From assembly GCF_044704955.1 (NCBI RefSeq), contig NC_091989.1, forward strand, positions 86,056,001-86,120,000: DNA of 64,000 bases. Direction: 5' to 3'. Shown piece after piece: positions 9,301-54,291 of the stretch. The stretch's first letter is position 1. The number at the start of each line of letters is the position of its first letter. A model generated the notes under the pieces. The model had not been told where the DNA came from. It made no database searches and saw nothing but the letters and a program-made list of their open reading frames with translations. Made by a program: the position numbers and the translations under genes. The DNA is from Pristiophorus japonicus. Taxonomy: Eukaryota.

Positions 9301-11010
9301 ACTGAAAAACACGGAGACACAGGGAAATAGACAGAAACACACTGAAACACAGGGAAACATACTGAAACATACGGAAACACACTGAAACACAGGGAGAGAC
9401 AGTGAAACACGGGGAAACATGCTGAAACACACTGAAACACACTTAAAGACACTGAAACATAGGGAAACACACTGAAACACAGGGAAACACAGTGAAACAC
9501 AGGGAAACACAGTGAAACACAGGGAAACACACTGAAACACAGGGAATCACACTGAAACACAGGGAAACACACTGAAACACGGGGAAACACACTGAAACAC
9601 ACTGAAACATGGGGAAACACACTGAAACACAGAGAAACACACTGAAACACAGGGAAACACACTGAAACACGGGGAAACACACTGAAACACACTGAAACAC
9701 ACGGAAACACAATGAAACACGGAAACACACTGAAACACACTGAAACAAACTGAAACATGCTGAAACAAGCTGAAACACGCTGAAACACACTGAAACACAC
9801 TGAAACACAATGAAACACATGGAAACACACTGAAACACACTGAAACAAACTGAAACACGCTGAAACAAGCTGAAACACGCTGAAACACAGGGAAACACAC
9901 TGAAACACAGGGAAACACACTGAAACACACGGAAACACAATGAAACACATGGAAACACACTGAAACACAGGGAATCACACTGAAACACAGGGAAACACAC
10001 TGAAACACGGGGAAACACACTGAAACACACTGAAACACGGGGAAACACACTGACATGCAGAGAAACACACTGAAACACGGGGAAACACACGGAAACACAG
10101 GGAAACACACTGAAACACAGGGAAACACACTGAAACACACTGAAACACGGGGAAACACACTGCAACACAGAGAAACACACTGAAACACGGGGAAACACAC
10201 TGAAACACAGAGAAACACACTGAAACACAGGGAAACACACTGAAACACGGGGAAACACACTGAAACACAGAGAAACACACTGAAACACAGGGAAACACAC
10301 TGAAACATGGGGAAACACACTGAAACACAAGGAAACACACGGAAACACAATCAAACACACGGAAATACACTCAAACACACTGAGACACACTGAAACACAC
10401 TGAAACACAGGGAATCACACTGAAACACACTGAAACACAGGGAATCACACTGAAACACAGGGAAACACACTGAAACACGGGGAAACACATTGAAACACAC
10501 TGAAACATGGGGAAACACACTGAAACACAGGGAAACACACTGAAACACAGGAAAACACACTGAAACACACGGAAACACACTGAAACACACGGAAACACTG
10601 AAACACATGGAAACACTGAAACACATGGAAACACACTGAAACACACTGAGACACACTGAGACACACTGAAACACATGGAAACACAGGAAAACACAAGAAA
10701 ACACATTGAAACACACCGAAACACACTGAAACATGTAAAAACACTGAAACGCAGGGAAACACATGGAAACACTGGGAAACACAGGGAAACAATCTGAAGC
10801 ACAGGGAAATACACTGAAACACTGAAACACAGGGAAACACTGCAACACAGGGAAATGCATAAAAACTCACTGAAACATAGAGAAACACAGAAACACATTG
10901 CAACACAGCAAAACACAGGGAAACACAGGGAAACACAGGAAAACACAGGGAAACACAGGGAAACTCATGGAAGTACAGGGAAACACATCGAGACACAGCG
11001 AAACACAATA
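6400..11010. repeat. 4.6-kb tandem satellite, 10-bp unit GAAACACACT with variants (GAAACACAGG, GAAACACGCT etc.) and higher-order blocks
   Basis: 10-nt periodicity is directly visible. Diagnostic variants recur at 520-bp spacing (6991/7511) and 560-bp spacing (8661/9221). Edges are more degenerate than the core. Confidence 0.98.
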
Positions 11011-22776: not shown

Positions 22777-25700
22777 TATTGTGTTCCTAACACAGATGAG
22801 GCTGCACACAGGGAGGTTAAAGTAACAGTGGCCTCAGTCTTTAATAAGACACTCCAGAGTAAGGAACAGGCCTTAGGGGCCGGCTTATATACAGTGCTCC
22901 CAAGGGATGATGAGATCCCTTCAGGGGATGTACTCCCTGGTGGCAGAACATGGGAGTGCATGCTTTACAGATACACAACATCACTCCCCCTGAAAGTCAA
23001 AGTGAAAACAATTTAAATGGTGAGGCAGTTGGGAGCCCTCTTTCCTTGGTGGACAGTCTCGGTACAAATGTCTGTTCTGGTGTGTTGGCTGTTCCCTCGC
23101 TGGGTTGGCATGTTGTTGGCCCTGCAGGGCTGCTGGGTGAGCATGGCCTTGCTGGGCTGTTGGGAGTGATGGGTTCGATTTCCTGGTCTGGGGTGGTGTT
23201 GTTGATCCTTTGGGAGTGTGTTCTGGGCTCGAAAAAGGTGGTGTCTGCTGTGGGTTGTACAGGGCAGTCTGTGAACTACAGCCTCATTTGGTCCAGGTGC
23301 TTTCTGCAAATTTTTCCATTGTCTAATTTGACTACAAACATCCTACTCCCTTCTTTAGCTATCACCGTGCCCGCAATCCACTTGGGATCATGTCCATAGT
23401 TTAGCACACACAAAGGGTCATTCAGATCAATTTCCCATGACACAGTGGCGCGACCATCGTTTACATTTTGTTGCTGCCGCCTGCTCGCCATGCAGGATGG
23501 AGTGAACCAGCGAGAGTCTGGTTTTAAGTGACCTTTTCATGAGTAGCTCAGCCGGGGGCACCCCTGTGAGCGAGTGGGGTCTCGTGCGGTAGCTGAGCAG
23601 TACTCGGCACAGGCGGGTTTGGAGTGAGCCTTCTGTGACTCGTTTAAGGCTCTGTTTGATTGTTTGCACTGCTCACTCTGCCTGCCCATTGTAGGCTGGT
23701 TTAAACGGGGCCGAGGTGACATGTTTGATCCCATTGCGGGTCATGAATTCTTTAAATTCAGCACTGGTGAAACATGGCCCATTGTCACTGACCAGTATGT
23801 CAGGCAGGCTGTGGGTGGCAAACATGGCCCACAGGCTTTCAATGGTGGTGGTGGTGGTGCTTCCCGACATTATTTCACATTCAGTCCAATTTGAAAAAGC
23901 ATCCACCACCACCAGGAACATTTTACTGAGAAACGGGCCCGCATAGTCGACATGGATCCTTGAACATGGTCTGGAGGGACAGGACCACAAACTTAGATGT
24001 GCCTCTCTGGGCACGTTGCTCAACTGAGCACACACGCTGCATTGCCATACACAGGACTGTAAGGCAGAGTTGATACCGGGCCACCACACGTGGGATCTGG
24101 CTATCGCTTTCATCATTACAATACCCAGGTGTGTGCTGTGGTGATCCGAGATGAACGTCTCCCTGCCCTTTTTGGGTAGCACTACGCGGTTACCCCACAA
24201 CAGGCAGTCTGCCTGAATGGACAGCTCAGCGTTTCGCTGCTGGAACGGCTTGATTAGCTCTCGCATTTCAACGGGGATGCTGGCCCAGCTCCCATGCAGT
24301 ACACCGTTTTTTACTAGGGACAGCAGAGGATCTTGCCTGGTCCAAATCCTAATCTGGAGGGCTGTGGCAGGTGAGTTATCATTTTCAAACGCTTCCATGA
24401 CCATCAACAAGTGCCACCATTAACAAGTTTGCAGGCTGCGCCATTTCCACCCCCGTGGTGGGCAATGGTAGCTGACTGAGAGCATCTGCACAGTTCTCGG
24501 TGCCTGGCCTGTGGCAGATGCTATAGTTATATGCTGATAGCGCGAGTGCCAACCTTTGTATGCTGGCTGAGGCATTAGTATTTATCCCCTTGTTTTCAGC
24601 GAACAGGGATATGAGGGGCTTGTGATCGGTTTCCAGCTCAAATTTGAGGCCAAACAGGTACTGATGATTTTTCTTTACCCCGAACACACATGCTAATGCC
24701 TCTTTCTCAATCATGCTGTCGGCCCTCTCGGCCTTAGACAAGCTCCTGGAGGCACAGGCGACAGGTTGCAAATTCCCTGCAATGTTAGCTTGTTGTAATG
24801 CACACCCGACTCCATACGACGAAGCATCACATGCTTGCACACGTTTTCTACACGGGTTATACATTACAAGCAGCTTGTTGGAGCATAAAATATTTCTGGC
24901 TTTCTCAAAATCAATTACTAGGTATTTTCCCCATATCCAGTTCTCACCTTTACGCAATAACACATGTAGCGGCTCTAAGAGAGTGCTTAACCCCGGTAGG
25001 AAGTTACCAAAATAGGTGAGGAGCCCCAGGAATGACCGCAGCTCCGTTACGTTCTATGGCCTGGGCGCATTCCTGATAGCATCTGTATTGGCATCTGTGG
25101 GCCGAATGCCGTCCGCCACGAACTTTCTCCCCAAAAACTCCACTTCTGTTGCCATGAAGATGCATTTTGACCTCTTCAACCGCAGCCCTATGCAATCTAG
25201 TCGCTGGAGGACCTCCTCCAGGTTTTGTAGGTGCTCGACAGTGTCCCAAACCGTGACCAATATGTCGTCCTGAAAAACCACCATGCGTGATACTGACTTG
25301 AGTAAGCTCTCCATGTTTCTCGAGAAGATCGCTGCAGCCGACTGAATTCAAAACGGGCATCTGCTGTAGATGGACAGTCCCTTGTGCATGTTGATGCAGC
25401 TGAGGCCCTTCAAAGACTCCTCCAGCTCCTCCATCATATAGCCCAAAGTCAGGTCGAGCTTGGTGAATATCTTGCCTCCTGCCAGCGTCACAAATAGGTC
25501 ATCTGCCTTAGGTCCTGTAGCAAGAAACGATTAATAGTTCCTTTATAATCATCGCAAATCCTGACCGTACCATCACATTTGAGTACTGGAACAATCGGGC
25601 TGGCCCACTCGCTGAATTCCACTGGAGAGATAATGCCCTCACGTTGCAGCATGTGCAGCTCGATTTTCACTCTCTCCCTCATCGTGTGGGGTACTGCTCG

Positions 25701-28294
25701 CACCTTGTGGTGAATTGGTCGTGCCTCTGGAACCAAGTGGATCCGCACTTTCACCGCAGAAATGTTTTCAATACCTGGCTCAAAAATGGAACAAATTTGT
25801 TAAGAACCTGGGTACATGAGGCCTCACTGACATGTGATAGCGCTCGGATGTCATCCCAGTTCCAGCGGATTTTGCCCAGACAACTTTTTCCAAGCAGTGT
25901 GGGGCTATCGCCCGGGACAATCCAGAGTGGCAGTTCATGCACCGTGCCCTCGTAGGTGACCTTGACCATGGCACTGCCCAGGACAATGATAAGCTATTTG
26001 GTGTACATTCTCAGTTTCGTGTGGATGGGGCTCAGGGCTGGTCTGAGTGACTTGTAGCACCACAGTCTCTCAAACATCTTTTTACTCATGATGGATTGGC
26101 TTGCGCCAGTATGCAGTTCCATGGCTATGGGTAAGCCATTCAATTTTACATTGAGCATTTTTGATGGACATTTCGTGTACTTCAGCATCTGCATCTTCTC
26201 TCTGAGACTCGAAATTGCTTTGATCCACCATGGACCGATCTTCCTCTGCCACGTGGTGGTTAGGTTTTGCAGAGCTTGCAGCTCACCTGCAAGCTCATTG
26301 GAGGTGCCCCATTGTTCCACAGCTCTTGCAAACATACCCTTTGAAGGGGCATGAATAGGCTGAATGGAAGCCTTCACAACGCCAACAAGGTGTGAATTGC
26401 CTTGCATTCATCCTTTGCTGCGGACTCTGAGTCATCTGGGTCACCTGAGGCCTGCTGGCAGTTGCAGACTCGTGGTTTCTGCCCTGTACATTTCTGCTCG
26501 CAAACACAGTTCCAGTTAATTTACGAACATTGCTAGCACTTCTGTGTTGAGATATTTGTTTGGTGTTATCACTGGTGAACATAAACGCCTGTGCTATCGT
26601 AATCGCCTTACTTAGGGTTGGTGTCTCTACAGTCAAATGTTTTCAGAGGATGGTCTCGTGGCCAATGCCCAGTACAAAAATGTCTCTGAGCATTTGCTCC
26701 ATGTAGCCATAAAACTCATATTGTCCTGCAAGTCGCTTTAGCTCGGCGACGTAGCTCACCACTTCCTGACCTTCAGATCGCTGGCACGTGTAGAACCGAT
26801 ACCTCGCCTTCAGCACGCTCGCCCTTGGGTTAAGATGCTCCTGAACCAGTGTACACAGCTCCTCATACGACTTATCTGTGGGTTTCACCGGAGCCAGAAG
26901 ATTCTTCATGATGCTGTAGGTCGGTGCCCCGCAGACCATGAAGAGGACCGCTCTCCTTTTTGCAGCGCTTCCTTCTCCATCCAGCTCGTTGGCTACAAAG
27001 TACTGATCTAGCCGTTCAACATAGGCTTCCCAGTCCTCACCCTCTGACAACTTCTCCAGGATGCCCACAGTTTGCTGCATCTTTGCGTTGGTTTCGCATA
27101 CTCGTTGCCAGTTATTATGTTCCTAACACAGATGACACTGCACACAGGGAGGTTAAAATAACGGTGACCTCAGTCTTTATTAAGACACTCCAGAGTGAGG
27201 AAATGGCCTTAGGGACCGGCTTATATAGAAACATAGAAGATAGGTGCAGGAGTAGGCCATTCGGCCCTTCGAACCTGCACCGCCATTCAATTAGTTCATG
27301 GCTGAACATATAACTTCAGGACCCCATTCCTACTTTCTCGCCATACCCCTTGAGCCCCCTAGTAGTAAGGACTACATCTAACTCCTTTTTGAATAGATTT
27401 AGTGAATTGGCCTCAACAACTTTCTGTGGTAGCGAATTCCACAGGTTCACCATTCTCTGAGTGAAGATGTTTCTCCTCATCTCGGTCCTAAATGGCTTAC
27501 CCCTTATCCTTAGACTGTGACCCCTGGTTCTGGACTTCCCCAACATTGGGAACATTCTTCCTGGATCGAACCTATCTAAACCGGTCAGAATTTTAAATGT
27601 TACGATGAGATCGCCTCTCATTCTTCTGAACTCCAGTGCATGCAAGCCCAGTTGATCCAATCTTTCTTGATATGTCAGTCCCGCCATCCCGGAAATCAGT
27701 CTGGTGAACCTTCGCTGCACTCCCGCAATAGCAAGAATGTCCTTCCTCGAGTTAGGAGACCAAAACTATACACAATACTCCAGGTGTTGCCTCACCAAGG
27801 CCCTTTACAACTGTAGTAACACCTCCCTGCCCCTGTACTCAAATCCCCTCGCTATGAAGGCCAACATGCCATTTGCTTTCTTAACCGCCTGCTGCACCTG
27901 CATGCCAACCTTCAATGACTGATGTACCATGACACCCAGGTCTCGTTGCACCTCCCCTTTTCCTAATCTGCCACCATTCAGATAATAGTCTGTCTCTCTA
28001 TTTTTAACACCAAAGTGGATAACCACACATTTATCCACATTATAGTTCATCTGCCATGCATTTTCCCACTCACCTAACCTATCCAAGTCAGTCTGCAGCC
28101 TCATAGCATCCTCCTCGCAGCTCACACTGCCACCCAACTTAGTGTCATCCGCAAATTTGGAGATACTACATTTAATCCCCTCGTCCAAATCATTAATGTA
28201 CAATGTATATAGTGCTCCCAAGGGATGCTGGGATCCCTTGGGACTTCAAGGGAAGCACTCCCTGGTGGCAGAACATGGGAGTTCATGCTTTACC
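22777..28294 (-). mobile_element. Full-length decayed Gypsy (Mag-like) element B
   Basis: 3' LTR 22777-22980 next to a PPT; gag with CWRC..H..C knuckle, PR, RT VVFQDD, RNase H CDASSYG, IN DYAGP/DNGP; PBS 27101-27110; 5' LTR 27113-28294 split by CR1; TSD GGTTT at 22772-22776 and 28295-28299. Confidence 0.95.
27227..28205 (-). mobile_element. CR1 3' fragment inserted at the TATA box of the Gypsy B 5' LTR
   Basis: YINDLDEG..KFADD..LWNSLP on -; TATATA on both flanks. Confidence 0.9.
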
Positions 28295-30829: not shown

Positions 30830-30884
30830 ATGTCTGTATTTGATGTGCTGTTGCACCTCTCAGCCCTGGGCATTATTTACACAG
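30830..30884 (+). CDS. Exon 1 (leader peptide) of VJ-C1-TM Ig-superfamily receptor
   Basis: ATG at 30830 gives MSVFDVLLHLSALGIIYT+g (55 nt, hydrophobic), ending at phase-1 donor ACAG|GTTTCT. A 202-nt intron precedes the V exon, the classic Ig leader arrangement. Confidence 0.8.
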
Positions 30885-31086
30885 GTTTCTATATTTATAC
30901 CTGTCTGATAAATAGCATAGTGTGAATAAAAACTCAATGAGCTGTGTAGAAGTCACTTCTGTGCAATGTTCATTGTACAATTTCCTCATTTTCTTTCGTA
31001 CTATTTCTGCCGCATTATTTCCTCCCTTTTAATCCCCCTGATCAGTATCACTGCCTGTAACCCGTGTTTGTGTTTATTTCTGACAG

Positions 31087-31407
31087 TTACTGACGTGACC
31101 TCTGTCCCGGTGCTTCAGATACCCCAACGTGTGACGCAGTTGAAAGGTAGAAATGTATCCATATATTGTTCTTCGACGATTTTCGATCCCAACGAAATTG
31201 TAGATGTTTATTGGCGGAGAGCCGGTCAGGACGGCGCTTTGGATCCGACTGCAGACAACAGGAAAACAATGATACCTTTCAGGCAAGGATCTGCGGAGTT
31301 GCACCTGCAGAATGTGATTTTACAGGACTCCGGGGTCTATTATTGCAGCGTGAGAGACGGGAGAGAAAAGCTTTACAACGGGAATGGGACGGAGCTTATT
31401 GTACATG
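31087..31407 (+). CDS. Exon 2: single-exon V-type Ig domain with germline-joined J-like G strand (NKp30/NCR3-like VJ domain)
   Basis: Acceptor tttatttctgacAG|, donor |GTGAGT, 321 nt, phase 1/1. Motifs: VSIYC (B-strand Cys), VYWRR (C-strand Trp), LHLQNVILQDSGVYYC (DxGxYxC), GNGTELIV (GxGTxLxV). Lies within ORF 30966..31421. Confidence 0.93.
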
Positions 31408-34334
31408 GTGAGTCTTACTGAGGGGGTAATGGGCCAACGTATGATCATACAGCTGTAGGTCAGACGATATTTAATAAATCAGCAGCCAGGCATGTTGTCT
31501 CAGTTCGGTTCGGAGTAGTTACATTCCCTCCTATTTGTAGTGTATCCTGGCAGTTCACACCCAGCCGCACCGGTCACCCAACACGGGACATTCAAATTCA
31601 GATTGTCTGATTCAACAATTATCGAAAATTAAAAAGAGTCTGAATGGAATATAGCCTAGCAAAACATCATTCAATCCTATTTTCACAAAAGTTCCCTACT
31701 CGACCCCATTCATATCGGCACTCCGAACTCGAAAGACTATTTCCCAGAGCCTGGCGACTCAAACCTGGGGATACTACAGTAACAATCAGAAACTATTAGC
31801 AAATAGATGCAAGCTTTGCAGACAGACAGATAAATGACGTGTAGCAAAGCAAACCAAGAGCTAGCTAATAATGATTCCGCGGGACATAGAGGAGCGGCGG
31901 AATAAACACTGAACAACACGTTACTGCTTATAATCCTAGATTTTATTTCACTAATGTTGGATCTAATTTAGTCTGACAGATGTCATTACTTAGATACTAG
32001 ATTTTATTTGCACTGACGTAGATTTGCTTACATGGAGCGATATATTTACTCCGAGTATAGATTTGACTTACACGGAGAGATTTATTTATGCTGATTATAG
32101 ATTGAATTTCGTCTCGTATCCTGCTGAAGAAGCGACTAAGCGTTTCTGCGCTCTTCCCTCGGTAAGTCAGTGTAATCAATGTCCGGGCACGCAGGAGCAG
32201 TGAGAGATATTGTAGAACTCTGCAGGATTATTGATTATTGCGGGGGGGGGGGGGTACACGGGAAGCACGTTATCCAAACTGTGCATCCGTTCCAAATATA
32301 AGAGACCTGCTTAGTAAAAAGCTCGACATTTAAAATGGGTAATTGTATAATCGATAGCAGAGGGTAAGAGGGGAGATTATGAGGATCTTGATAGTTGGGG
32401 GTAGGGTTTTCAAGCATTGGATAAGGAACATTTCCATGAAACAGAACTAAATCGCGTGCCACGCGGCTGATGCCTGGGTCATCTTCTGTTACTTCTCGGT
32501 CTATGTCACCAATACTGTTGTCTGGGCACCTTTTATCAACCCGGTTCCAGTCACAAACTTTTTTTTGTCGGTTACAGTGTAAATCCTATCCTCTGTCTCT
32601 CGCTGGAAGTTCAGGCGTGGAATCCGACAATCGGAGGGATAATGGGTCAGTGTTTTTAACCAGCACCTTCTCTGCTGGTGAGAATAGGTGTCAGATGTTA
32701 TTCGCTCTCAGACTTTCTCTGTGTGAAGATTGCGGCGGGATTAGACATACTCCGATATTTAAATCTTACCTTTTGTTCCACAGCGATGCAAATTGAACAA
32801 TGGGGTCCCGAGTTGGATTAAATTCCAATTTGCCTTTTAACAAGCCGTTGACTGGGCCATACTCACAGGTGTGCGTGTTATATTGAGTGTTCCATAAGAG
32901 AAAGGACATTACAAGAAAGTGCAAGGCGAATTCGTTGCGACGAACCCAGGGTATAGTGAAGATGGTTATGATGGGCGACTTGATAAAGCGGCCGATGTTC
33001 TGTCGAGTTGAGAAAGGTCGAGGGAGTCTCATTCGAAGAGCTTTGAGGAGAGTTTTGAGAGTTTTGAGAGGCTATATCCACTGATTACATTAACTGCAAC
33101 AAGGGGTCATAAACTTAGTATCAGCTCTAGAAACAGAACATATTTCACTCAACGATGTATGGAAAATATCGGCACAAGAGGCTATTGAAGGGAATTGGGC
33201 AGACGGTTTACCGGGAAATTAGACATAAAGAAAAATGCGTGGGAGGGGGCAGGGGAAAATATTGGGCAGAGAGCAGGGAGCGAGACTGTAGTGTGCCTGC
33301 TTCGCTGCCTCCTACCGTGTTTACAGGTTTAAGAATTCACTGGAAAATAAGGAGGACAATTGAGTTGTTCGCGGAGAAATTGAGCGAGGCACGGTACCCA
33401 GTTCAGTCCGATCAAAGCGCGGGTCAAACATGGGCCGTTTCAGAGGTTCAGATTTCTGCCCACAATCCCGTCCCTCAAGGCTCGCTGCCGGGAGCGCTGA
33501 CTCCTGCAGGTATTTGTTCCCTAGATGTGACCGAAACAATCTCTGACACTGCAGGATTATCCCCTTATCCGTCATATTTGTGAGCTGGTCATTTTTACAT
33601 TAATTTTCCCTCTCCACCCCTCGGCACTTTGTGCCTGAACACGAGCGAAGAGTTGAAATAATCCCCGCGGATCGATGCTGGGGGTGAGGATCTGAGCATT
33701 ATCCGGGAATGAAGCAAGTGGGTCAGCTCAGCTAGTCGGCAGCGGTATTCCTGTCAGACTCAGACAACTCCCACGCCCGCACACAGACACCCGGTAGATT
33801 TGGACTTTGTGTGATAGTGTAAAACCGGTGATAGCGAATCGCCAGCCCGTTTTGCAGCTCTCCCGACCTTTAGTTGTTGGAAAATCAGGAGAGATGTAAA
33901 ACAGGAGGCCGATTTGCGAACCCGGTTTACATTATTGCACAAAGTCAAGATCTAATCCCATTATACTTCTCTCTGTTGTCTCCCTGTTAGTGACACTAAA
34001 TGCTAGTTAAAATCCCCGGAGCACAATCACGGCGATCCACCTGCAGAAGGCAACAGCGGGAGCTTCAGAGGCCCGCTGGACGGGGTCTGTTTAATTCGGA
34101 CTTTAATTGGTTTCAGTGCATTTGTGTCATCGGATCATGGATAAAGACACGAACGAAAGAAATATTGCAGTTTACTGTTTTAAACAAACCGAGCGTCCGT
34201 TATTAATATCAATATGGCGATGAAAAAAAAGCCTCTTAAAGAGACACTGCCCTGCAGCTTTCTGACGGCTGCAGCTTCCCATCTCCACTGCAATGTAAGA
34301 ATAACGATGTCAACACATTCTTTGTCCTTTCCAG

Positions 34335-34615
34335 TGCCGCCAACCCCTGTGAAGGCGACCTGCCTGCCCTCTCGGACCCTCACACTCCTCTGTACAACAG
34401 CTGGGTTTTTCCCGGAGGAGTTTACCCTCACTTGGTATAAAACTGGCATGAAAATTACATCTGGGATAAACACGACGGAAAGACGGAGCGAGCAGGGATT
34501 ACATCAGGTTTCAAGCTCCCTCAACCCTATGGAGAGCGGGTCGGAGTATATCTGTGAAGTGTCCCATCTCATCTCTGGGCTCCAGCCGACGGCAGCTATA
34601 CGGTTCGTGATCCGA
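34335..34615 (+). CDS. Exon 3: C1-set Ig constant domain (apparent 1-nt frameshift near 34570)
   Basis: Acceptor tttgtcctttccAG|, donor |GTAAGA. LTLLCTTAGFFPEEFTLTWYK (CxxxGFxPxxxxxxW) and YICEVSH (YxCxVxH) are C1 signatures. Length is 281 nt, not 3n. Confidence 0.88.
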
Positions 34616-34759
34616 GTAAGAGGCTCAGATTCTCAATACTGCCCTGACCTGTATCGGATATAGCGACACGTCACGGGCTTTCTGACCCCTTTAATCGTTA
34701 ACCAGATCATTCTCAATGGAGGGAGTGTGAATGGAGTTATTGAGCTCATTGCGGTGTCA

Positions 34760-36760
34760 AAAACCTTTTGACGATGGGCCGGACAACATATCACTCAGTA
34801 ACATGGCGTGGGTTGTGTTTAGAGGGCAGATCCTGATTTGAATAGGAAATCGTTTGCATTCTCATAGATAGAGGGTTGCTGATAATGGCAGTGAATCCAT
34901 GTGGATGCCCGCTATTAGTTTGATCCGATAGGGATCGGTGTAGGGCCGTTATTCTTCATTGACTTATATCAATGATCTGGAGGAAGGTGCCGCAAGTTCA
35001 CTGATGATGCAAATATCTGTGCCAGTGTCAGAACCTTTGATGAGCAAAAACGTAGATTATACTCCGATCTAGAGGGGGGAATGGGCTTGTATCTGACAGC
35101 TTACATTCAGGTGGATATACGAAGTGCAATACATGTGGGTAGGGCTAATGGCAGGTATGTGTATAGTAGTCCGGGTGCTGAAATAAACTATGCTGAGCAG
35201 TAAAGAGACCTAGGTGTTATCTAAAGATCGATGGCCACGGCCCAGAGGCAATAGCCAAGACAATAGACAAGTGGGGTTTATAGCAAAAACCAACCAATAC
35301 CAACAAACTGGGCTCGAATCTCCTTGACTTTGTCAGCCCTCATCGCTAACACTGTGTTCAATTCTGGTCCCTCATATGGTCAGAGAGATAGAGGCACTGG
35401 GAAACGGAACAGTGGAGAGCCACTCGATCGATAACTAATTTAATCACCCTTGGGTATCACGATAGGCTCAAAGATCTGGCTATTTCTACTTTAGAAAAGC
35501 ATAGATTTCGGTGGATTGAATTGAACGACGATAGGGCTAGACTGTGTAAGCGTGGATAGGGTGTTTGAATTGGACAAATTAGGGAGAAGGACGGGCCACA
35601 GATACATGTCATGTACGCACAGAACTATTTAGATTTCAGGAGTTCTGTCTTCTCCCATGAGGTCGCTGGCCTTTGGAATTAATCAAAGACTCGCGCAGTG
35701 AATGTGCTTTCGCTGCAAATGTTTAAAAGGAGCTGGACGAGTTCCTTGAGGAGATTAGTATCATACAATCATAGAGCACAGAAGTAGGCCATTCGGCCCA
35801 TTGTATTGAAGTCTCTCAACACTGGTACGATTCTAGTAAATGTCTTCACTGTCCTCTCTAAGGCCTTGACATTCTTCCTAAAGAGTGGTGGTGTCCAGAT
35901 GAGACCTAACTAGTGTTCTATTAAGGTTTACCATAACATCCTTGCTTTTGTACGCTATTCCTCCATTAATTAAGCCAGGGATTCTATGTATTTTTTAACA
36001 ACCTTCTCAGCTTGTCCTGTCAACATGAAATGTTTGTGCACATACAGCTCCAGGCTTCTCTATTCTGCCATCCCTTTAAGATTCTACCATTTATTTCATA
36101 TTGCCTGTCCTCAGTCCTCCTAATAAAATATATCATTTCACATTTCACTGCGATAAATTTCATACGCCACGTGTCTGCCCATTTTATCAGTCTGGCTAGG
36201 CACTCTTAAAGTCTGTTGGTAGCCTGCTAATTGTTCAGTATATTTCCCTGATCTGCGTGAGAGGTCCAGATTCTGAGAATCTAACTGTATCTGTGTTATG
36301 GATAGGAGCCTGTCAGGGGCCACCTGTCACCAATAATCCGCACAAGAACATTCTCAATGCAGCGAGTGTGTAAGCGGTGACAGTGCTCATTAAATCTCAA
36401 AAAGATTTCGACTTTGACCCTGTAACTGAAGATCCGGAGACATTTATAACGGGCAGCGGAATCCTTATCGCCACCAAAAAGACCTGAATGACATTCAGCA
36501 TTTGGACTGATAAGTAGCAACTAGCATTCGCGCTACACGAGTGCCAGGCAATACCATATCCAACAACAGAGTCTAACCACTGCCTCTTGATATTCAATGG
36601 CATTACCATCGCCGAATTCCCCATCATAAACATTCTGGAGGTCACCATTGATAAGAAACGGAACTCGACCAGCCACATAAACACTGTGGCCTCAAGAGTA
36701 GGTCAGAGGCTGAGTATTCTGTGGCGAGTGCCTCACATCCTGACTCCCCAATGGAGTGAT
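34760..36760. mobile_element. Cluster of old CR1-type fragments in intron 3 (+ 34760-35750, - 35760-36200, + 36490-36760)
   Basis: Decayed YINDLEEG/KFTDD and CR1 3' motifs; boundaries approximate. Confidence 0.6.
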
Positions 36761-36974
36761 ATAGCTGAGATTAGTTGTTGACCCCGTCAGAGAGTCTAAT
36801 CTACAGAGGGGCTGAGGAGCCTATGTGAAGACCGAGGGGCCAGAAATTTAAACTGTTTATATATACGTTAATTTCAGTATCTACCTATGTTCTAATCCCA
36901 CTAAAGTTAATGTAAATAAACTGAAATGAACCCTAAAACACACAGCCCTTGTATCCAAGCCATTCTCTGCCATC

Positions 36975-37240
36975 AGTTCTCTCTCTCTCTCTCTTTCTGT
37001 CTATCGCTCCCTCTATCTTTCTCTCTTTCTCCCTCTCTATGTGTGTATATGTCTTTTTCAGTTTCAGTCTTAGCCTTGCTCTTTGGTCATGTCTATGTCC
37101 CTCTCTCTGTCTATGTACGTCTGTCTGTGTATGTCTCTCTCGCTTGGTCCGTGTGTCTCTCTAACCTCCACACTCTATTTCTGTCTCTCTTTCTTTTTCT
37201 CTATCTCTGTTTGTCTCTATCTATCTTTTTCGACCCTCTT
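36975..37240. repeat. CT/TCTG-rich low-complexity tract
   Basis: Degenerate (CT)n/(GTCT)n runs. Confidence 0.8.
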
Positions 37241-37249
37241 TCATTAACA

Positions 37250-38826
37250 GAAGAACATAAGAACATAAGAATTAGGAACAGGAGTAGGCCACCTAGCCCC
37301 TCGAGCCTGCTCTGCCATTCAACAAGATCATGGCTGATCTGGCCGTGGACTCAGCTCCACTTACCCGCCCGCTCCCCATAACCCTTAATTCCCTTATTGT
37401 TTAAAAATCTATCTATCTGTGACTTGAATACATTCAATGAGCTAGGCTCAACTGCTTCCTTGGGCAGAGAACTCCACAGATTCACAATCCTCTGGGAGAA
37501 GAAATTCCTTCTCAAGTCGGTTTTAAATTGGCTCCCCCGTATTTTGAGGCTGTGCCCCCTCATTCTAGTCTCCCCTACCAGTGGAAACAACCTCTCTGCC
37601 TCTATCTTGTCTATCCCTTTCATTATTTTAAATGTCTCTATAAGATCACCCCTCATCCTTCTGAACTCCAACGAGTAAAGACCCAGTCTACCCAATCTAT
37701 CATCATAAGGTAACCCCCTTATCTCCGGAATCAGCCTAGTGAATCGTCTCTGTACCCCCTCCAAAGCCAGTATATCCTTCCTTAAGTAAGGTGACCAAAA
37801 CTGCACGAAGTACTCCAGGTGCGGCCTCACCAATACCCTATACAGTTGCAGCAGGACCTCCCTGCTTTTGTACTCCATCACTCTCGCAATGAAGGCCAAC
37901 ATTCCATTCGCCTTCCTGATTACCTGCTGCACCTGCAAACTAACTTTTTGGATCCATGCACGAGGGCCCCCAGGTCCCTCTGCACCTCAGCATGTTGTAA
38001 TTTCTCCCCATTCAAATAATATTCCCTTTTCCTGTTTTTTTTCCGGTTGGATGACCTCACACTTTCCGATATTGTATTCCATCTGCCAAAGCTTAGCCCA
38101 TTCACTTAACCTATCCAAATCTCTTTTCAGCCTCTCTGTGTTCTCTACACAACCCGCTTTCCCACTAATCTTTGTGTCATCTGCAAATTTTGTTACACTA
38201 CACTCTGTCCCCTCTTCCAGGTCATCTATGTATATTGTAAACAGTTGTGGTCCCAGCACCAATCCCTGTGGCACACCACTAACCACCGATTTCCAACCCA
38301 AAAAGGACCCATTTATCCTGACTCTCTGCTTTCTGTTCGCCAGCCAATTCTCTATCCATGCTAATACATTTCCTCTGACTCTGCGTACCTCTATCTTCTG
38401 CAGTAACCTTTTGTGTGGCACCTTATCGAATGCCTTTTGGAAATCTAAATACACCACATCTATCAGTACACCTCTATCCACCATGCTCGTTATATCCTCA
38501 AAGAATTCCAGTAAATTAGTTAAACATGATTTCCCCTTCATGAATCCATGCTGCGTCTGCTTGATTGCACTATTCCTATCTAGATGTCCCGCTATTTCTT
38601 CCTTAATGATAGTTTCAAGCATTTTCCCCACTACAGATGTTAAACTAACCGGCCTATAGCTACCTGCCTTTTGCCTGCCCCCTTTTTTAAACAGAGGCGT
38701 TACATTAGCTGCTTTCCAATCCACTGGTACCTCCCCAGAGTCCAGAGAATTTTGGTAGATTATAACGAATGCATCTGCTATAACTTCCGCCATCTCTTTT
38801 AATACCCTGGGATGCATTTCATCAGG
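37250..38826 (-). mobile_element. Well-preserved CR1 LINE RT fragment, antisense in intron 3
   Basis: ORFs 37987..38817 and 37351..37938 (YRPVSLTS, YLDFQKAFD, PQG, FADD) joined by one frameshift; tail AAGAACATAAGAACATAAG. Confidence 0.95.
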
Positions 38827-38941
38827 ATTATCTATCTATTTTACCCCACTCTCTCTCCCTCTCTCTTCCTCCTTTCTGCTTTCTGTTTCCCTGATGTTTC
38901 TCACTAAACTCCTTTAAATGTTTCTCTGTTGCTGCCCACAG

Positions 38942-39054
38942 CCTCTACTGACCTATACCAAACCATTTATCTGAGCCGTTTCCTGTTGGGGTTAATGGTG
39001 GTTCTGGTGGGGACCATCCTTATTGTGGATCATTTAAAATCAGTCTCAATTTAA
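38942..39054 (+). CDS. Exon 4: transmembrane segment with Arg plus a tail of a few residues
   Basis: Acceptor tttctctgttgctgcccacAG|. Phase-1 reading gives STDLYQTIYLSRFLLGLMVVLVGTILIVDHLKSVSI*, with stop TAA 39052-39054 followed by donor AG|GTAAGA at 39056/39057. Too short to appear in the ORF track. Confidence 0.8.
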
Positions 39055-39159
39055 AGGTAAGATGTTCATTTCTTGATTCTCACTGCAGAATTATAGCAAT
39101 AACACACAGAAAACAAAAGGACCGATTAATTCTTTTGTGACTTCAGATTGGTTGTTCTG

Positions 39160-41540: not shown

Positions 41541-44500
41541 GACACTAATTCGATTTGACAATAATCACATACTTCAATGTGATGGGTAGGTTGGAGTTAA
41601 GATTTTCCCACTCCCAGCACCCACCGTAAATCGGTATCAAATGGATTGTGGTCCTTTCCTGTCCCAGGGACACCTGGGCCAATTGCCTTGTCCGGCTGGT
41701 AAAAGAGCATAGGGCTGAAAACATAACTCTATTTCTCTCTCTACAGAAGTGGACCTGAGTCCATGATCGGATAAACCATGATTTTATTAAATGGCTGAGC
41801 AGGCACGAGGGGCTGTATGGCCTACTCCTGCTCCTATTTCTTATGTTCTTATACCGCCTGCCCTGTTGAGTACTTCCAGCATTTCCTGCTTTTATTTCAG
41901 ATATTTAGCACCCGCAGTACTTTGCTTTTGCATCAAATAAATTGCGTCAGTTTCGCATCAGCTTCAATTGTTCGCCGTGATATCGAGACAGTTTCATTGA
42001 CAAAGTGTAAATTACGCGCTATTGAAGGCTGTATAATTTTTGTTCCTATATTTATTGGATACAAGTTTGACTGATATCAGCAAAGTCTGGTCCTTGAGGG
42101 GGGCGGTCAGGAATGCAGTGTATTGGAGGCAATCGTCAACGACCGTGTCTCTGCCGCTCAATATCAAACTCTTTGCCCTGTATTGTAGAGGTATTTCTAA
42201 ACGTGGGTCTTAGATTCTAGGAGACAGGAACGGCCTTTAAATATTGGAACTGACGAGCATTCGGTGCCTGTTGTAAAATGTTCAAATAAACACAGAAAAG
42301 GACACATTTATTTTCTCTTAATTTCGATGAAGGAACAAAGTGTTTTAATAAATCCCAGCATCAGACTAATAATAAAATTAATGCTGATAAAATAATAACA
42401 GTAAGGGAGGAATGTGAGGCTGGGATGGCAGCAAAATGATGCTGAGAGGAAGGACAGGAGTGGAATCCCTGCTCAGATACAGTGAAGGTTTGGAGGAATA
42501 AAGTAAGCATTGGAATCAAACTGGCAGCGTCAGTGGGGAAAGACAAACCACTCCCATCTCCTGGGGTAAAACAACTCGAGTCCTGCGCCATTCACAGCAT
42601 AACCCTGGGGACAGGTCCACAGAGAACGCTCTCATTCTCCAAGTGTGCGAAGGGGTTTTACTGGGAGCAATCGTGGACTATATTAAGCAGGAAAACTTAT
42701 CAGAAAGGAATTGATCTTTGCGCTCATAGCTAGTACGAATCTATCTGTAGAAATATTCAGAGGTTCCCGTGTCAGCAGGGCCCCGACACACTGTGCTTGT
42801 AAAGTCAGATGAATTTGTACTGAATACTGTGGCATCAATGTGGGAGAAGGTGACGGGAACGAAACCGGGAAAAGATTCAGACTGAGGAGTCTTTAGACTG
42901 ACATCTATTCCACACACTCCAGTCACAGGCCCCTAATCACTAATGGGCTCAGGAGTCCCGCCATTCAGGAGATTCTCAATGATATTTCCTGTTTCCCATT
43001 CAATAAATAGAAATTTGTTATTAAGGGACTTGCGGTGTTACAGCGGTCCTGCACTGCACCGTTTCATCTGTAAAAGCCATCATTGCTATTTAGTTATTTT
43101 CCACCAGTAGATTTTTGGAATCATCGAATCATAGGATGCTTACAGCAGCTGCAGCTCTCTGCAGGAACACTTCAGCTAGTCCCTTTCCTCCGCCCTTAGC
43201 CCTGCATTTTTTTTCCTTCAGGTACTTATCCAATTTCCAGTTGAAAGCCACGACTGAGTCTGTCTCCACCACCCTTTCAGGCAGTCAATTACAGATCATA
43301 ACCATTCGCTTTGTTAAAATGTTCTTCCTCCTTTGGTTGCCAATCAACATAAATGTGTGTCCTCTGGTTCTTGATCCTTCTGCCAATAGGAACAGTTTCT
43401 CTCTATCTACTCTGTCGAGACCCCTCATGATTTTGAACACCTTTGTAAAATCTCCTCTTTACGTTCTCTGCTGTAAGGAGATTAACTTCAGCGTCGCTAG
43501 TGTATCCACATAACTGAAGTCACTCATCAGCTCCTCACAACTTGCTTTCCCAAAAATCTTTGTATCATCAGTAAATTTGGCTACATTACATTCAGTCCCT
43601 TCATCCATGTAATTAATATAAATTGTAAATATTTGAGGCCTCAGAACTGATCCCTGTGGCACCCCACTAGTTACAGTTTGCCAACCTGAAAATTGCCCAT
43701 TTATCCCATCTCTCTGTTTTCTGTGAGATAGCCAATCCTCTATCCACGCTAATATATTACCCCCAACCCCATGAACTTTTATCTTGTGCAGTAACTTTTT
43801 ACGTGACACCTTATCGAATACCTTCTGGAAATCCAAATACACGACATCTACTGGTTCCCTCTTTATCCACACTGCTCGTTGCATCCTCAAAGAACTCCAG
43901 CAAATTTGTCAAAAATGATTTCCCTCTCGTAAAACCATACTGACTCTGCTTGACTGCATTATCATTTTCTAAATGTCCTGCTACTACTTCCTTAATGATT
44001 GACACATGCATTTTTCTAATGACAGGTGTTAGGCTAACTAGTCTATAGTGTCCTGCTTTCTATCTGCCTCCTTTCTTAAATAGTGGCGTTACATTTGCGG
44101 TTTTCCAGTCCACTGGGACCTCTCCAGAATCCAGGGAATTTTTGTAGATTACAACCAATGCATCCAGTATCTCTGCAGCCACTTCTTTTAAGATGCTTGG
44201 ATGCTGGCCATCAGGTCCAGGGGACTTGTCCACCTTTTGTCCCATAAGTTTGCCTAGTACCTTTTCTCTAATGATAGCGATTGTTTTAAGTCAACCCCCC
44301 GCTCCCCACAAAATAGTCCTTTGATTATCAATTGGGATGCTTTTAGTTTCCACTACCATGAAGACCGATACAAAATATTTGTTTAATGTCTCTGCCATTT
44401 CCCTGTTTCCCATTATTAATTTCCCAGTCTCATCCTCTAAGGAACCAACGTGTACTACTCGCTTCCTTTTTATATACATGGAGAAGCTCTTACTGCCTGT

Positions 44501-45309
44501 TTTTCTTTTTCCACTAGTTTACTCTCATAAGCTATCTTCTCTCTCTTTATCGTTTTATTAGTCGTCCTTTGCTGGTTTCTAAACATTTTCGAATCCTCTG
44601 GCCTTCCCCTGTTCTTTGCAGCATTGTATGTCTTTGTTTTCAATTTTATACCATCCTTTACTTCCTTAGTTAGCCACGGATGATTCATCCTTCTCTTAGA
44701 TGCTTTCTTTTTCACTGGAATATATCTTTGCTGAGAGTCATGAAATATCTCCTTAAATTTTTGCCACTGCTTTTCTACAGTCCTACCGTTTAATATATTT
44801 TTCCAATACTCTTTAACGAGCTCGGCCTTCATACCCTTGTAATTACTTTTATCTAAGTTCAGCACACTAGCTTTCTCATCCTCAAATTGAATTTGAAATT
44901 CTACCATGCTATGATCACTCCTCGCAAGAGGATCCTTCACTACGAGATCATTAATGAATCCAGACTCGTTACACATTACCAGATCTAAAATAGTCTGCTT
45001 GTTGGTTGGTTCCATTACGTATTCTTCCAAGAAATCATCCCGCATACACTCTATGAACTCTTCCTCAAGGCTATCTTTGCCAATTTGTTTTGTCCAATCA
45101 ATATGAAGGTTAAAATCGCCAATGTTTATTGCTGTACCTTTCTTACAAGCCTCCATTATTTCTTACAGTGTGGCTATTGTTTTGGCACCTGGTGACCAGT
45201 GACTTATTTCCGCAATTATTTCTTATCTCCACCCAAACTCGTTCTACACCTTGATCTTCTGAGCCAATATCATTTCTCACTACTGCACTGATCTCACCCC
45301 TTATTAACA

Positions 45310-47967: not shown

Positions 47968-48232
47968 TTATTAACAGAGCTAACCCACCTCCTTTGTCTT
48001 TATGCCTATCCTTACAAAATGACAAATACCGCCGAAAATTCAGTTCCCACCCTTGGTCACCTTGCAACCACGTTTCTGTAATGGCAATCAGATCATAGCC
48101 ATTTATTTCTATTTGTACCGTCAACTCATCTATCTTGTTACGAATGCTGCTTGCATTCAGATACAGAGCTTTTAATGTTGTCTTATGTTCATATGCTCTG
48201 CCCCTTCCTGTCACACTCTGGTTATCATTACC

Positions 48233-49564: not shown

Positions 49565-52500
49565 TGTTATCTATGTAACATTCATGTAACTGTAACCTTC
49601 ATGTAACAACACTGCATAATGTATACACCTAAGAAATGCACACCTTGACCACAGGGGGTGAACGTGTGGGAGACACTCCTCATCTGGTCATCCAGGTATA
49701 TAAAGGGAGGTCCCTCGCAGGGTCATCACTCCTTGATCCCGTGACTAAAGGTTTGGGTCACACAGTGACCTTGTCTGCAGAATGTGCCTCGTGTGAATTT
49801 ATAGTAGAGTGTAAGGACACTACATTTGGTGATGAGAATCGGGAATCAACGACTCACGAGGATGGCCACCGGTAGCATAGAGGAACGGTATTGTGTTGGT
49901 GAGGACTGGGCCGATTTCATTGAGAGGCTCCAGCAGAGCTTTGTCATGAAGGACTGGCTGGGAGATGCAGTGGCTGACAAGCGAAGGGCGCATGTACTGA
50001 CCATCTGTGGACCTAAGACGTATGCGCTGATGAAAGACCTACTCGCATCCGAGAAGCCGGCGGTAAAAACCTTTGAAGAGCTCAGCAAACTGATCGATGA
50101 GCACCTCAAACCGGCGAGCAGTATACACATGGCCCGACAACGATTCTATACACACCGATGCCAGGAAGGACAGAGCATACCAGACTTCGTTGCGGACCTT
50201 CGGCGCTTGGCCAGCCTCTGTAAGTTCATAGACGCCTTCAGAGGGGAGATGTTAAGGGATTTCTTTATTGAGGGCATTGGTCATGCCGGAATTTTCAGAA
50301 AGCTAATTGAGACCAAGACTTGACCTTGGAAGTGGCGGCGTTGATGGCTCAGACCTTCATGGCGGGGGAGGAGGAAACCAAGATAATATACCCGCGCAAC
50401 TTTGCTTCCAACGTGGTGATGAATCAGGGAGTTAACATTGTAAACACGACTCAGACCCTGCAGGCAGGCAAGGTGGCAAGGGCAATTCGACACCACCCAG
50501 GCAGCAACAGACTCTAGAGTAGTTCCTCAACAGAAACAATGGCAGGTTGAACGGACATTTACACCATCACGGTGGACAATGCATCCCGGGATGGGGCCAT
50601 TGGCACCCACTAACAGAGTGTTCAAGAGTAATCAAAGAGACAATCAGAGAGGAATGCCTGGTAACAGCTCTTTTGTTCACAACAATCTCAGTTCATGCTG
50701 GAGGTGTGGGGGCAGACATGCTGCAAAAAGCTGTAGGTTTCAACAATTTAGCTGTATAAATTGTAACTTCAGTGGACATTTAGCCAGAATGTGCAGGAAG
50801 CCCGCAGCAAGGCTAATTTACGAGGCAGATGAACCAGAAGAGGGGTCTGCAAGGCAGGTTGATGCTTGGGACAAACAATGGACGCTGAACTTCAGCAGGT
50901 TCATGTGGCAAACATCCACAGCTCATATACCAAATCGCCACCAATGATGATGAAAGTCCTATTAAACAGCATCCCAGTACACATGGAGCTGGACACAGGG
51001 GCCAGCCAGTCACTTATGAGTGTCCAACAATTCGAGAAACTATGGCCACTCAGAGCTAGCAGACCCAAACTAAAACGCATTGACACGCAATTACGGATGT
51101 ACACCAAAGCGATCATCCCAGTGCTAGGCAGTGCAATGTTGGTGGTCACACATAATGGATCAGAGAACCGGCTGCTACTCTGGATTGTCCCGGGAAATGG
51201 TCCCGCGCTTTTGGGGAGGAGCTGGCTTGCCGAGATGAACTGGAATAGGGGGGATGTGCACGCCATTTAATCTGTGAAGCGAAGTTCATGCTCAGAGGTC
51301 CTACAAAAATTTGAGTCACTATTGATGTTGGGACTTTCAAAGGTACCAAGGTAGTGATACGAATCACCCCGGACGCCAGACCAGTGCAACACAAAGCCAG
51401 AGCTGTGCCGTATGTGATGCGGGATAAAATTGAGAGTGAGTTGGACAGGTTGCTAAGAGAGGGCATAATTTCGGCCTTTGAATTCAGTGACTGGGCAAGT
51501 CCCATCGTCCCTGTCCTAAAAACGGATGGCTCGGTCAGGATCTGTGGCGACTACAAGGCCACTATCAACCGTGTGTCACTACAAGACCAATACCCGCTTC
51601 CAAGAGTGGAGGATCTTTTTGCCACGCTGGCAGGCGGCAAGCTGTTCACCAAGTTGGATCTCACTTCAGCCTACGTGACCCAGGAACTGGCCGAAGAATC
51701 CAAGCTACTGACCGCCATCACCACGCACAAGGGGCTGTTTGTCTACAACAGGTGTCCATTTGGCATTCGATCAGCGGCCGCTATCTTTCAAAGGAACATG
51801 GAAAGCCTGCTCAAATCTATCCCTGGAACAATCGTATTTCAGGACGACATCCTTATCATGGGTCGAGACACCGAGGAACATCTCTACAACCTGGAGGAGG
51901 TGCTACGCCGATTGGACCAGGTAGGCCTGCGACTAAAGAAGTCCAAGTGTGTGTTTTTGGGCCCAAGTTTTGGGCAGGAGGGTTGCCGCAGACGTGATCT
52001 GGCCCACTGAATCCAAAATGGAGGCGATTTGATGTGCACCCAGGCCCGGCAACACATCAAAGTTGCGTTCATTTCTGGGACTCTTGAAATTTTTCGGGAA
52101 CTTTCTGCCGAACTTAAGCACATTGTTGGAGCTGCTACATGTGCTCCTGCGTAAGGGTTGCGATTGGTTTTTGGGGGACTGCCAGGAACGGGCTTTCAAT
52201 CAGGTGCGGAGCCTGCTTTGTTCTAATAAGCTGTTGACCCCTGTAAGAAATTGGTTTTAACATGTGATGCATCATCCTATGGGGTTGGGTGCGTGTTGCA
52301 GCAGAATAATGATGAGGGCCAACTCCAACCTGTGGCTTATGCCTCCAGGTCGCTCTCCCAAGCAGAACGGGGATATGGGATGGTTGAAAAGGAAGCACTC
52401 GCATGTGTCTATGGGGTGAAAAAGATACACCAGTACCTTTTTTGGCAGAAGGTTCGAGTTAGAAACGGACCACAAGACATTAACATCCCTGTTGTCAGAC

Positions 52501-54291
52501 AGCAAAGCTGACAATGCCAAAGTGTCAGCTTGCATACAGCAATGGGCTTTCACGCTGGCTGCGTATGACTACACCATACGGCACCGTCCAGGCACCGAAA
52601 ATTGCGCTGACGCACTCAGCAGGCTTCCACTGGGCACAACTGAGGGGGAAGCGGAGCAAAGCGCTGAGATGGTCATGGCTGTTGATGCCTTTGACAGCGC
52701 AGGCTCCCCCATCACAGCCCGCCAGATCAAAATCTGGACCAACAGAGATCCCTTCCCATCCTTGATTAAGAAATGTGACCTGACTGGGGAGTGGCGCCCG
52801 CACATGGAGCATGCCCCGAGGATGTCAGACTGTTTCACAGATGGATGGATGTGCTCTCCATCCAAGCCGACTGCCTACTATGGGGCAGACGGATAGTCAT
52901 GCCCCAGAAGGGAAGGGAAGCATTCATCAGGGAACTCCACAGCGAGCACCCAGGCATTGTGCTAATGAAGACCATTGCCTGGTCACATGTATGGTGGCCG
53001 GGAATTGACTCAGACCTGGAACATTGTGTTCGCAGGTGCACGACGTGTGCCCAGCTGGGTAATGCCCCCAGGGAGGACCCACTCAACCCGTGGCCCTGGC
53101 CCACCAGGCCATGGTCACATATTCACGTAGACTACGTGAGCCAGTTCATGGGAAAAATGTTCCTCATTGTCGTTGATACGTACTCGAAATGGATCGAGTG
53201 CATCATTTGAATTCGTGCACGAGATCCACCACTGTGCAACCCATGGCTTGCTGGACATCCAGGTTAGCGACAATGGCCCGTGTTTCACTAGCTATGAATT
53301 CAGGGAGTTCATGTCGGGTAATGGCATCAAACATGTCAGGACAGCACCGTTCAAGCCAGCCTCCAATGGCCAGGCGGAACGTGCGGTCCAAATCATAAAA
53401 CAAGGCATGCTCCAGATTCAAGGACGCTCCCTTCAATGCCGCCTATTGCACCTCCTATAGGTCCCGACCGCATTCGCTCATGGGAGTCCCGCCCACAGAG
53501 CTACTCATGAAATGTACACTTAAAACTCAGCTGTCCCTCATTCATCCAGTCCTGTCAGACATTGTTGAGGGCAAGCGCCAGTCCCAAAATGAGTGCCATG
53601 ACCGTAACTCAAAGGGGAGGGGTATAGAAATCAATGACCCTGTATTTGTTCTTAATCATACTTTGGGGCCCAAATGGCTTGAGGGTACTGTAATTGGCAA
53701 AGAGGGGAATAGGGTCATTGTGGTCAGACTTAACAATGGACAGATATGCCACAAGTATCTGGACCAAGTAAAAAAAAGGTTCAGCATGGAAACTAGGAAC
53801 CTGAGGAAGATCATGAAATGTTGCCCACACCACCGCCAGTGAATGAGCAACAAGAACTTTCAGCAGCATGCACAGTCCCTGCGGCCAGCCTGGACAAGCC
53901 AGAATCACTTCAGGTAACAGAGACGCATGCCAAGGCTCAACAACCAGAGCCCCAACTGTGGCACTCCACGAGAGAGCGTCGACCACCTGAAAGACTTAAT
54001 CTTTGACCCCATAAGACGTGGGGGGGAGGTGATGTCATGTATGTAACCTTCATGTAACTGTAACCTTCATGTAACAACACTACAGACTGTATACACCTAA
54101 GAAATCACACCTTGACCACAGAGGGTGAAGTTGTGGGAGACACTCCTCACCTGGTCATCCAGGTATATAAAGGGAGGTCCCAAACAGGGTCATCACTCCT
54201 TGGTCCCGTGAATAAAGGTTCGGGTCACAGAGTGACCTTGTCTGCAGAATGTGCCTCGTGTGAATTTATAGTAGAATGTAAGGACACTACA
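49565..54291 (+). mobile_element. Full-length decayed Gypsy (Mag-like) element C, different LTR family
   Basis: LTRs 49565-49824 and 54033-54291 (TG..CA; about 18 substitutions and 1 indel counted by eye); TSD TTCCT; PBS TGGTGATGAG at 49827; PPT GGGGGGGAGGTGA; two zinc knuckles, ELDTGAS, IVFQDD, CDASSYG, DNGP. Confidence 0.97.

Follow-up and report, generated by a model that had tools for sequence, protein, structure and literature searches.

We analysed a 64,000-nucleotide (nt) stretch of the Pristiophorus japonicus genome (assembly GCF_044704955.1, contig NC_091989.1, positions 86,056,001 to 86,120,000 of the forward strand), which we call the window and in whose own numbering all positions below are given. 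The locus at 30830-39054 on its forward strand is probably a gene of four exons that belongs to a multigene family of the chondrichthyans. This family encodes non-rearranging membrane receptors of the V(J)-C1 kind, in which a variable (V) domain with a built-in joining (J)-like strand is followed by a C1-set constant domain and a transmembrane segment (TM); the copy at this locus is of the activating type and most likely a pseudogene of recent origin or a null allele. Each search took as its query either a single exon or a protein from the databases.

The gene model consists of four open pieces in the order leader, VJ, C1 and TM. A first-pass annotation had proposed four exons with canonical splice sites, and the coordinates, the splice sites, Pfam and the matches of relatives all confirm it: the donors are all GT (cag/gtttct for exon 1 and cga/gtaaga for exon 3, with the slash at the exon end) and the acceptors are all AG behind pyrimidine tracts. 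Exon 1 (30830-30884, 55 nt) supplies the start codon and most of the signal peptide in 18 codons plus one nucleotide and ends in phase 1, giving a split leader. Exon 2 (31087-31407, 321 nt, phase 1 to phase 1) translates into a 106-residue V domain (Pfam V-set, 1.1e-10) that has its J-like G strand inside, with the motif GNGTELIV (31380-31403), the G-x-G bulge motif of joined VJ domains. No heptamer-spacer-nonamer pattern of a recombination signal sequence (RSS) occurs anywhere in the 64-kb window, so the annotation was right to describe a V domain that has no RSS and shares its exon with the J-like strand. Exon 3 (34335-34615, 281 nt) encodes a domain for which Pfam favours the C1 set (3.8e-11, versus 3.8e-4 for C2-set_2) and which bears the signature Y-I-C-E-V-S-H. 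Exon 4 (38942-39054), read in phase 1, encodes a stalk and a TM helix comprising an Arg (38977-38979), 16 hydrophobic residues and Asp-His (39028-39033, with the Asp at 39028-39030); only the six-residue tail LKSVSI follows before the stop codon TAA (39052-39054), in agreement with the annotated C1-set domain and Arg-bearing TM lacking a signalling tail. A tblastn search with the four pieces found no second copy and no further immunoglobulin (Ig) exon in the 64 kb, and inhibitory-type TM or tail exons are likewise absent from the entire window, indicating that this is a stand-alone gene of the activating type.

The reading frame of this gene is interrupted in the C1 exon. Exons 1 to 3 total 657 nt, exactly 219 codons, and for this reason splicing from position 34616, where the sole usable GT lies, leads into exon 4 in frame 0, and a stop follows after 10 codons; exon 4 is open in the phase-1 frame only. 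Ig-domain exons of such genes run from phase 1 to phase 1, which for exon 3 needs 282 nt, and exon 3 is therefore one base short. In relatives, a conserved His is followed by five residues and then by P-A-N/D-x-S-Y-T-V. The main frame of the window copy keeps the His and five residues and then drifts into QPTAAIRFVIR (at the deletion site it reads ...SHLISGLQPTAAIRFVIR); the alternative frame from 34582 gives PADGSYTVRDP, which matches PADDSYTVRDP of the relative P0166 at 10 of 11 residues, and the exon then ends in phase 1. Because the alternative frame restores both the family segment and phase 1, we conclude that one base is missing from a short C run of the C1 G strand, at about 34581-34583 (feature span 34580..34583). 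The product predicted from the sequence as assembled has 229 codons and no membrane anchor, and the uninterrupted leader-to-TM reading frame of intact family members is thus wanting in this copy. The frame repair by which the first-pass annotation arrived at 256 residues thus concerns a real defect, since the copy as it stands is broken by the 1-nt deletion. Apart from this deletion, the remaining conserved positions and all splice sites are intact, and because the rest of the gene is intact, the likeliest reading of this activating-receptor copy is a pseudogene of very recent origin or a null allele.

Some further features of the gene are recorded here. An extra Cys lies in the C1 A strand at 34361-34363 (K-A-T-C, where relatives read K-I-T-R), the stalk Cys of Heptranchias P0166 (N-F-C-R) is replaced by Ser in the window copy, and a conserved interchain Cys is not evident. 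Downstream, the first AATAAA after the stop codon comes only at 40453 (that is, there is none for 1.4 kb), and a donor-like site of strong consensus, aag/gtaaga (39055..39062), lies two bases past the stop codon; the 3' untranslated region (UTR) may thus be spliced, with an intron starting at this site. The TCR alpha constant gene has a spliced 3' UTR.

Membership in a chondrichthyan family is indicated by the relatives of each exon. A full HMMER scan with the V exon against 1.84 billion representative proteins returned 302 proteins at E<=0.001 and 58 at E<=1e-10; the best hits with both V and C1 domains were all cartilaginous-fish proteins of 220-450 amino acids (aa), and 29 of the thirty hits whose sources were checked came from cartilaginous fishes. 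The thirtieth, the lizard protein P0085, carries immunoreceptor tyrosine-based inhibition motifs (ITIMs) and was considered as a distant relative, but it has three V domains and no C1 domain and was rejected. Another 41 members, every one of them chondrichthyan, came from a profile search, and the family as retrieved spans 18 species of chondrichthyans that include sharks, skates, rays and the chimaera Callorhinchus. The closest proteins in all exons are P0166 and P0167 of Heptranchias perlo (256 and 259 aa), which have the same short ending. Identity to P0166 is 64% in the V exon, 67.5% in the C1 exon and 67% in the TM exon; the V exon is 64-69% identical to P0166 and P0162 of the same species, and the leader is 61% identical to P0162 and P0166 and 83% identical to P0165. 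Across the Heptranchias and Heterodontus members compared, the ranges are 64-69% for V, 61-68% for C1 and 67% for TM. The exons, each matching predicted cartilaginous-fish proteins at 61-69% identity, are by this comparison of predicted sequences not chance open frames. Both the exon order (leader, VJ, C1, TM) and the family members found closest to the V and C1 domains place the gene within this family.

The pattern of conservation agrees with this placement. In an alignment of 40 family sequences, which has 9 invariant and 18 near-invariant positions, the window copy keeps all 26 of the positions that can be aligned (13 of 13 in V and 13 of 13 in C1 upstream of the frameshift), and the 27th (L206) falls in the frameshift zone; G117, G119 and V124 of the J-like strand are among the near-invariant positions. 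In the V tree, which like the C1 tree was built without named SIRP reference sequences, the window copy falls in a clade of 15 (Shimodaira-Hasegawa-like approximate likelihood ratio test [SH-aLRT] support of 100) that mixes activating and inhibitory members, and the C1 tree agrees. The automatic RefSeq names of the family proteins contradict one another (SIRP-alpha-like, SIRP-beta-like, tapasin-related-like, NCR3 ligand 1-like [NCR3LG1-like], Ig lambda-like, CD276 homologue, MHC class I or class II chain-like, and uncharacterised). The first-pass suggestion of an uncharacterised family holds in so far as our literature search found no paper describing it (related papers cover UrIg/UrIg2 [PMC12227049], shark major histocompatibility complex [MHC; PMC10751288] and the CD28 family [PMC11599192], and shark NCR3 work was outside the reach of the search), but not in so far as its proteins already stand in RefSeq under these contradictory names. 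Part of the family may already be described as shark NCR3: Kinlein reportedly described eight shark NCR3-family genes in 2021, and the V-only models P0003, P0006 and P0008 (see below) would resemble NKp30.

The family contains members of two signalling types. Inhibitory members (for example, P0004, P0162 and P0013) lack a charge in the TM and end in a tail, about 100 residues long, that contains up to four tyrosine motifs of the form S/L/V-x-Y-A-x-L/I. Activating members have a TM module that runs from an Arg through 16 hydrophobic residues to Asp/Glu-His/Tyr and then 6-14 residues to the end; the window copy has this module, and its spacing is the one shared without variation by eight genes from seven species, Callorhinchus among them. 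In an AlphaFold2 model of P0166 (mean predicted local distance difference test [pLDDT] score 91), two beta-sandwich domains are followed by a helix at 227-252 that is equivalent to the TM of the window copy, with the Arg five residues into the helix. In both the V and the C1 tree the two types are mixed and copies from the same species group together (Heptranchias P0162 with P0166, and Callorhinchus P0176 with P0183), a mixing by species that, at the level of predicted sequences, is the pattern of paired receptors. The first-pass reading of the gene as an activating receptor is a reasonable one in this setting, with the TM module kept across those eight genes beside inhibitory members with tyrosine-bearing tails.

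Two sets of gene models show related arrangements of the same parts. Callorhinchus milii P0176 (inhibitory) and P0183 (activating) have identical V domains and nearly identical C1 domains, and they derive either from one gene with alternative TM and tail exons or from two copies that were duplicated or converted very recently. In the isoform models P0003, P0006 and P0008 (from Scyliorhinus, Mobula and Heterodontus), the C1 exon is skipped and V is joined directly to the TM and tyrosine-bearing tail, yielding an NKp30/CD28-like one-domain receptor from the same gene. Word-indexed searches with the inhibitory tail (of P0162) and with the stalk and TM (of P0166) returned only close kin of the query, and the tail search brought up no SIRP; the index needs shared 5-mers, and these searches are uninformative.

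We compared the family with known immune receptors by scoring its profile against solved structures and weighing the scores against the number of domains. Antibody light chains (two domains) score about 80 bits, SIRP-alpha (three) 90.6 bits and UrIg2 (four) 104.8 bits, with E-values of 9e-25 for SIRP-alpha 2wng, 7e-22 for SIRP-gamma 4i2x and 4e-29 for UrIg2 (PDB 9dmx); a single-protein search with P0166 gave the same order, UrIg2 matching at 64 bits in one stretch across V and C1. Foldseek with the P0166 model placed antigen-binding fragment (Fab) light chains and T-cell receptor (TCR) beta chains at the top (E about 1e-16), at just 18-24% identity. A wider fold search ended in a tie at Z 13-15 among B7-H6, butyrophilins, nectins, MHC class II C1 domains (root mean square deviation 1.2-1.5 A, 27-29% identity), IgNAR, CD79b and NKp30, and because of this tie, fold comparison cannot place the family. 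In a language-model atlas a cluster labelled 'SIRBL' came second by features and tapasin-related clusters were also near, which we take as a lead only.

In its manner of working the family may resemble SIRP. As in SIRP, an N-terminal V domain with a J-like G-x-G-T-E-L-x-V strand precedes C1-set sequence, and inhibitory members with several tyrosine motifs in the tail are paired with activating members that have a charged TM residue and a minimal tail; many family members have also been named SIRP-alpha-like automatically by NCBI. Unlike SIRP (V, C1, C1), however, the family has a single C1 domain, its proteins of 256-270 aa consisting of V plus one C1, and its TM has an Arg near the outer end and an Asp at the inner end, whereas SIRP-beta has a Lys in the middle of the TM. 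Weighed against the number of domains, the profile scores do not set SIRP apart from antibody chains or UrIg2. Judged from predicted sequences, the family would work like SIRP, as paired V-C1 receptors, although it has a single C1 domain where SIRP has two and its charged TM is of another kind.

The comparisons with non-rearranging VJ genes are similarly divided. Joined VJ domains are known from CD79, NITR, SIRP, CD8, NKp30 and PRARP (PMC11599192). With UrIg and UrIg2 the family shares an elasmobranch single-exon VJ with a split leader and C1-type domains behind it, and with UrIg2 also the presence of a TM. The window gene has one C1 exon, in contrast to the three or more C1-type domains of these genes (three C domains in UrIg, which is secreted, and nine to eleven in UrIg2; PMC12227049). 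UrIg and UrIg2 are, furthermore, single genes at the MHC and at an Ig/TCR complex, whereas the present family consists of many dispersed genes, some activating and others inhibitory. The likeness to NKp30 (NCR3) lies in a non-rearranging VJ-type V domain with G-N-G-T in the G strand and in the TM Arg, through which NKp30 activates by way of adaptors with immunoreceptor tyrosine-based activation motifs (ITAMs); unlike NKp30, which has no C domain, the family has a C1-set exon between V and TM. The first-pass view of an NKp30-like V domain is not borne out, since NKp30 is absent from the best 60 sequence matches of the V exon to solved structures and its fold match (Z 13.2, 25% identity) is tied with those of dozens of unrelated V domains.

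With Ig light and TCR chains the family shares the two-domain V-C1 fold and a C1 domain with the signature Y-x-C-x-V-x-H; unlike the rearranging Ig and TCR genes, it has V and the J-like strand in one open exon with no RSS, making rearrangement impossible. PRARP is similar in its non-rearranging VJ, its one C domain, its TM and, in comparison with inhibitory family members, its ITIM-type tail. It is said to come from bony vertebrates and to have a C2-type domain (reportedly described by Fu et al. in J Immunol in 2019, a paper cited in PMC10751288 and PMC11599192), whereas Pfam favours the C1 set for the C domain here; the distinction from PRARP is drawn from its description only.

What this analysis establishes for the signalling part of the gene is its architecture, the conserved charged TM module and the lack of a signalling tail; inhibitory counterparts with near-identical ectodomains exist in other species. 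ITAM adaptors have an acidic residue in their TM, with which activating immunoreceptors pair through a basic residue in the outer third of their own TM. An intact copy would, by this analogy, bind a ligand through its V domain, with the C1 domain acting as a stalk, and the TM Arg, about five residues from the outside and followed by 16 hydrophobic residues, Asp-His and almost no tail, would recruit an ITAM-bearing adaptor with an acidic TM residue (of the FcR-gamma, CD3-zeta or DAP12 type). Ligand binding would then lead to cell activation, and the inhibitory partner would recruit phosphatases. In the window copy, the missing base in the C1 G strand would carry frame 0 into the TM exon and yield the unanchored product described above.

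Several points weigh against our reading of the locus. The closest relative is just 64-68% identical in predicted sequence, and orthology is not established; the exon junctions are predictions from genomic sequence and not from transcripts; coupling to an ITAM adaptor is suggested by the position of the charge; and the defect is a single base in a homopolymer. The last of these bears directly on the main rival, a serious one although we give it a minor share of the probability, namely that the gene is intact in the animal and that the base was lost from the short C run through an error of assembly or consensus. The locus would then code for a functional activating receptor similar to Heptranchias P0166, with a length of about 256 aa. 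The 26 conserved positions, every splice site and the entire TM module are preserved, as they would be in such an intact gene. Consensus errors in runs of two or three bases are rare in modern assemblies, however, and frameshifted members are common in fast-evolving receptor families, and we accordingly prefer a young pseudogene or null allele as the explanation of the defect.

Were the frameshift real and the gene nonetheless functional, the product might be a secreted V-C1 protein, for example a soluble decoy or an opsonin-like molecule. Two short open endings precede a stop, one reached by normal splicing (10 extra residues) and the other by read-through into intron 3 (18), and shark UrIg, another non-rearranging VJ-C1 protein, occurs only in secreted form (PMC12227049); but the shifted frame replaces the conserved end of the C1 G strand (the PAN.SYTV segment of the family) and no retrieved family member ends in this way, which makes a functional secreted form very unlikely. 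We give still less credence to the proposal that the gene is a singular and uncharacterised chimera of an NKp30 V domain with C1, surviving as an image of the antigen receptor that preceded the recombination-activating genes (pre-RAG). The one-exon VJ, split leader, C1 domain and TM with a basic residue do follow the chain plan of TCR and Ig light chains, and shark UrIg2, aligned over V and C1 in one stretch, is the solved structure that matches best outside the antibodies. Yet antibody chains, UrIg2 and SIRP-alpha reach similar scores when domain number is taken into account, so that no special closeness to the antigen-receptor stem emerges, and NKp30 is not a preferred match. The idea of a unique relic also fails on numbers, as the gene is one of many paralogues across the 18 chondrichthyan species and has a near-orthologue-like model of 256 aa in Heptranchias perlo. 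A pseudogene or null allele within the paired-receptor family accounts best, in our view, for the locus.

The surroundings of the gene are made up of repeats. No other host gene was found in the 64-kb window, which otherwise holds only retroelements and a satellite. The satellite occupies 4.6 kb (6400-11007) and consists of about 463 copies of the decamer TGAAACACAC with 76% matches. Both the extreme AT skew at 6-12 kb and the spurious long open reading frames (ORFs) of the reverse strand are due to this satellite. A Ty3/gypsy-type long terminal repeat (LTR) retroelement is present as four copies or fragments with broken frames, at 49800-53900 and 61800-64000 on the forward strand and at 23000-27100 and 1-3150 on the reverse strand, with aspartyl protease, RVT_1 (7e-23), Integrase_H2C2 and rve domains. 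Reverse transcriptase (RVT_1 at 1e-31) and endonuclease fragments of the long interspersed nuclear element (LINE) type lie on the reverse strand at 37354-38835, inside intron 3 and preceded by a CT-rich low-complexity stretch (about 36980-37230), and at 43462-45162. Residues 211-228 of the Chiloscyllium model P0011, an odd C-terminal extension, match the window at 48053-48106 (forward strand) with 67% identity; because the matching stretch is antisense to a LINE endonuclease ORF, this extension is probably a repeat-derived artefact of the gene model.

On its own the locus adds little, being one more activating-type member that is broken as assembled; its interest lies in the family. Non-rearranging genes that combine a joined VJ with C1 are thought to be the source material of antibody and TCR genes, and UrIg and UrIg2 have been named as their survivors in sharks (PMC12227049). 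It is conceivable, though we think it doubtful, that the family represents, next to these two, a third line of antigen-receptor-like genes that do not rearrange, and that it has kept a minimal one-chain plan (VJ, one C1 and a TM basic residue that would recruit signalling adaptors as in TCR chains) since before the chimaera-shark split. If so, the family would be the living system that models the pre-RAG receptor more closely than do the UrIg genes with their many C domains, and the window copy would be one recently disabled member of it. A large family found across the cartilaginous fishes that has the simplest VJ-C1-TM plan, paired activating and inhibitory signalling and inconsistent database labels would be a useful addition to the debate on the origin of these receptors, and would be a candidate for a natural killer (NK)- or myeloid-type receptor system of sharks.

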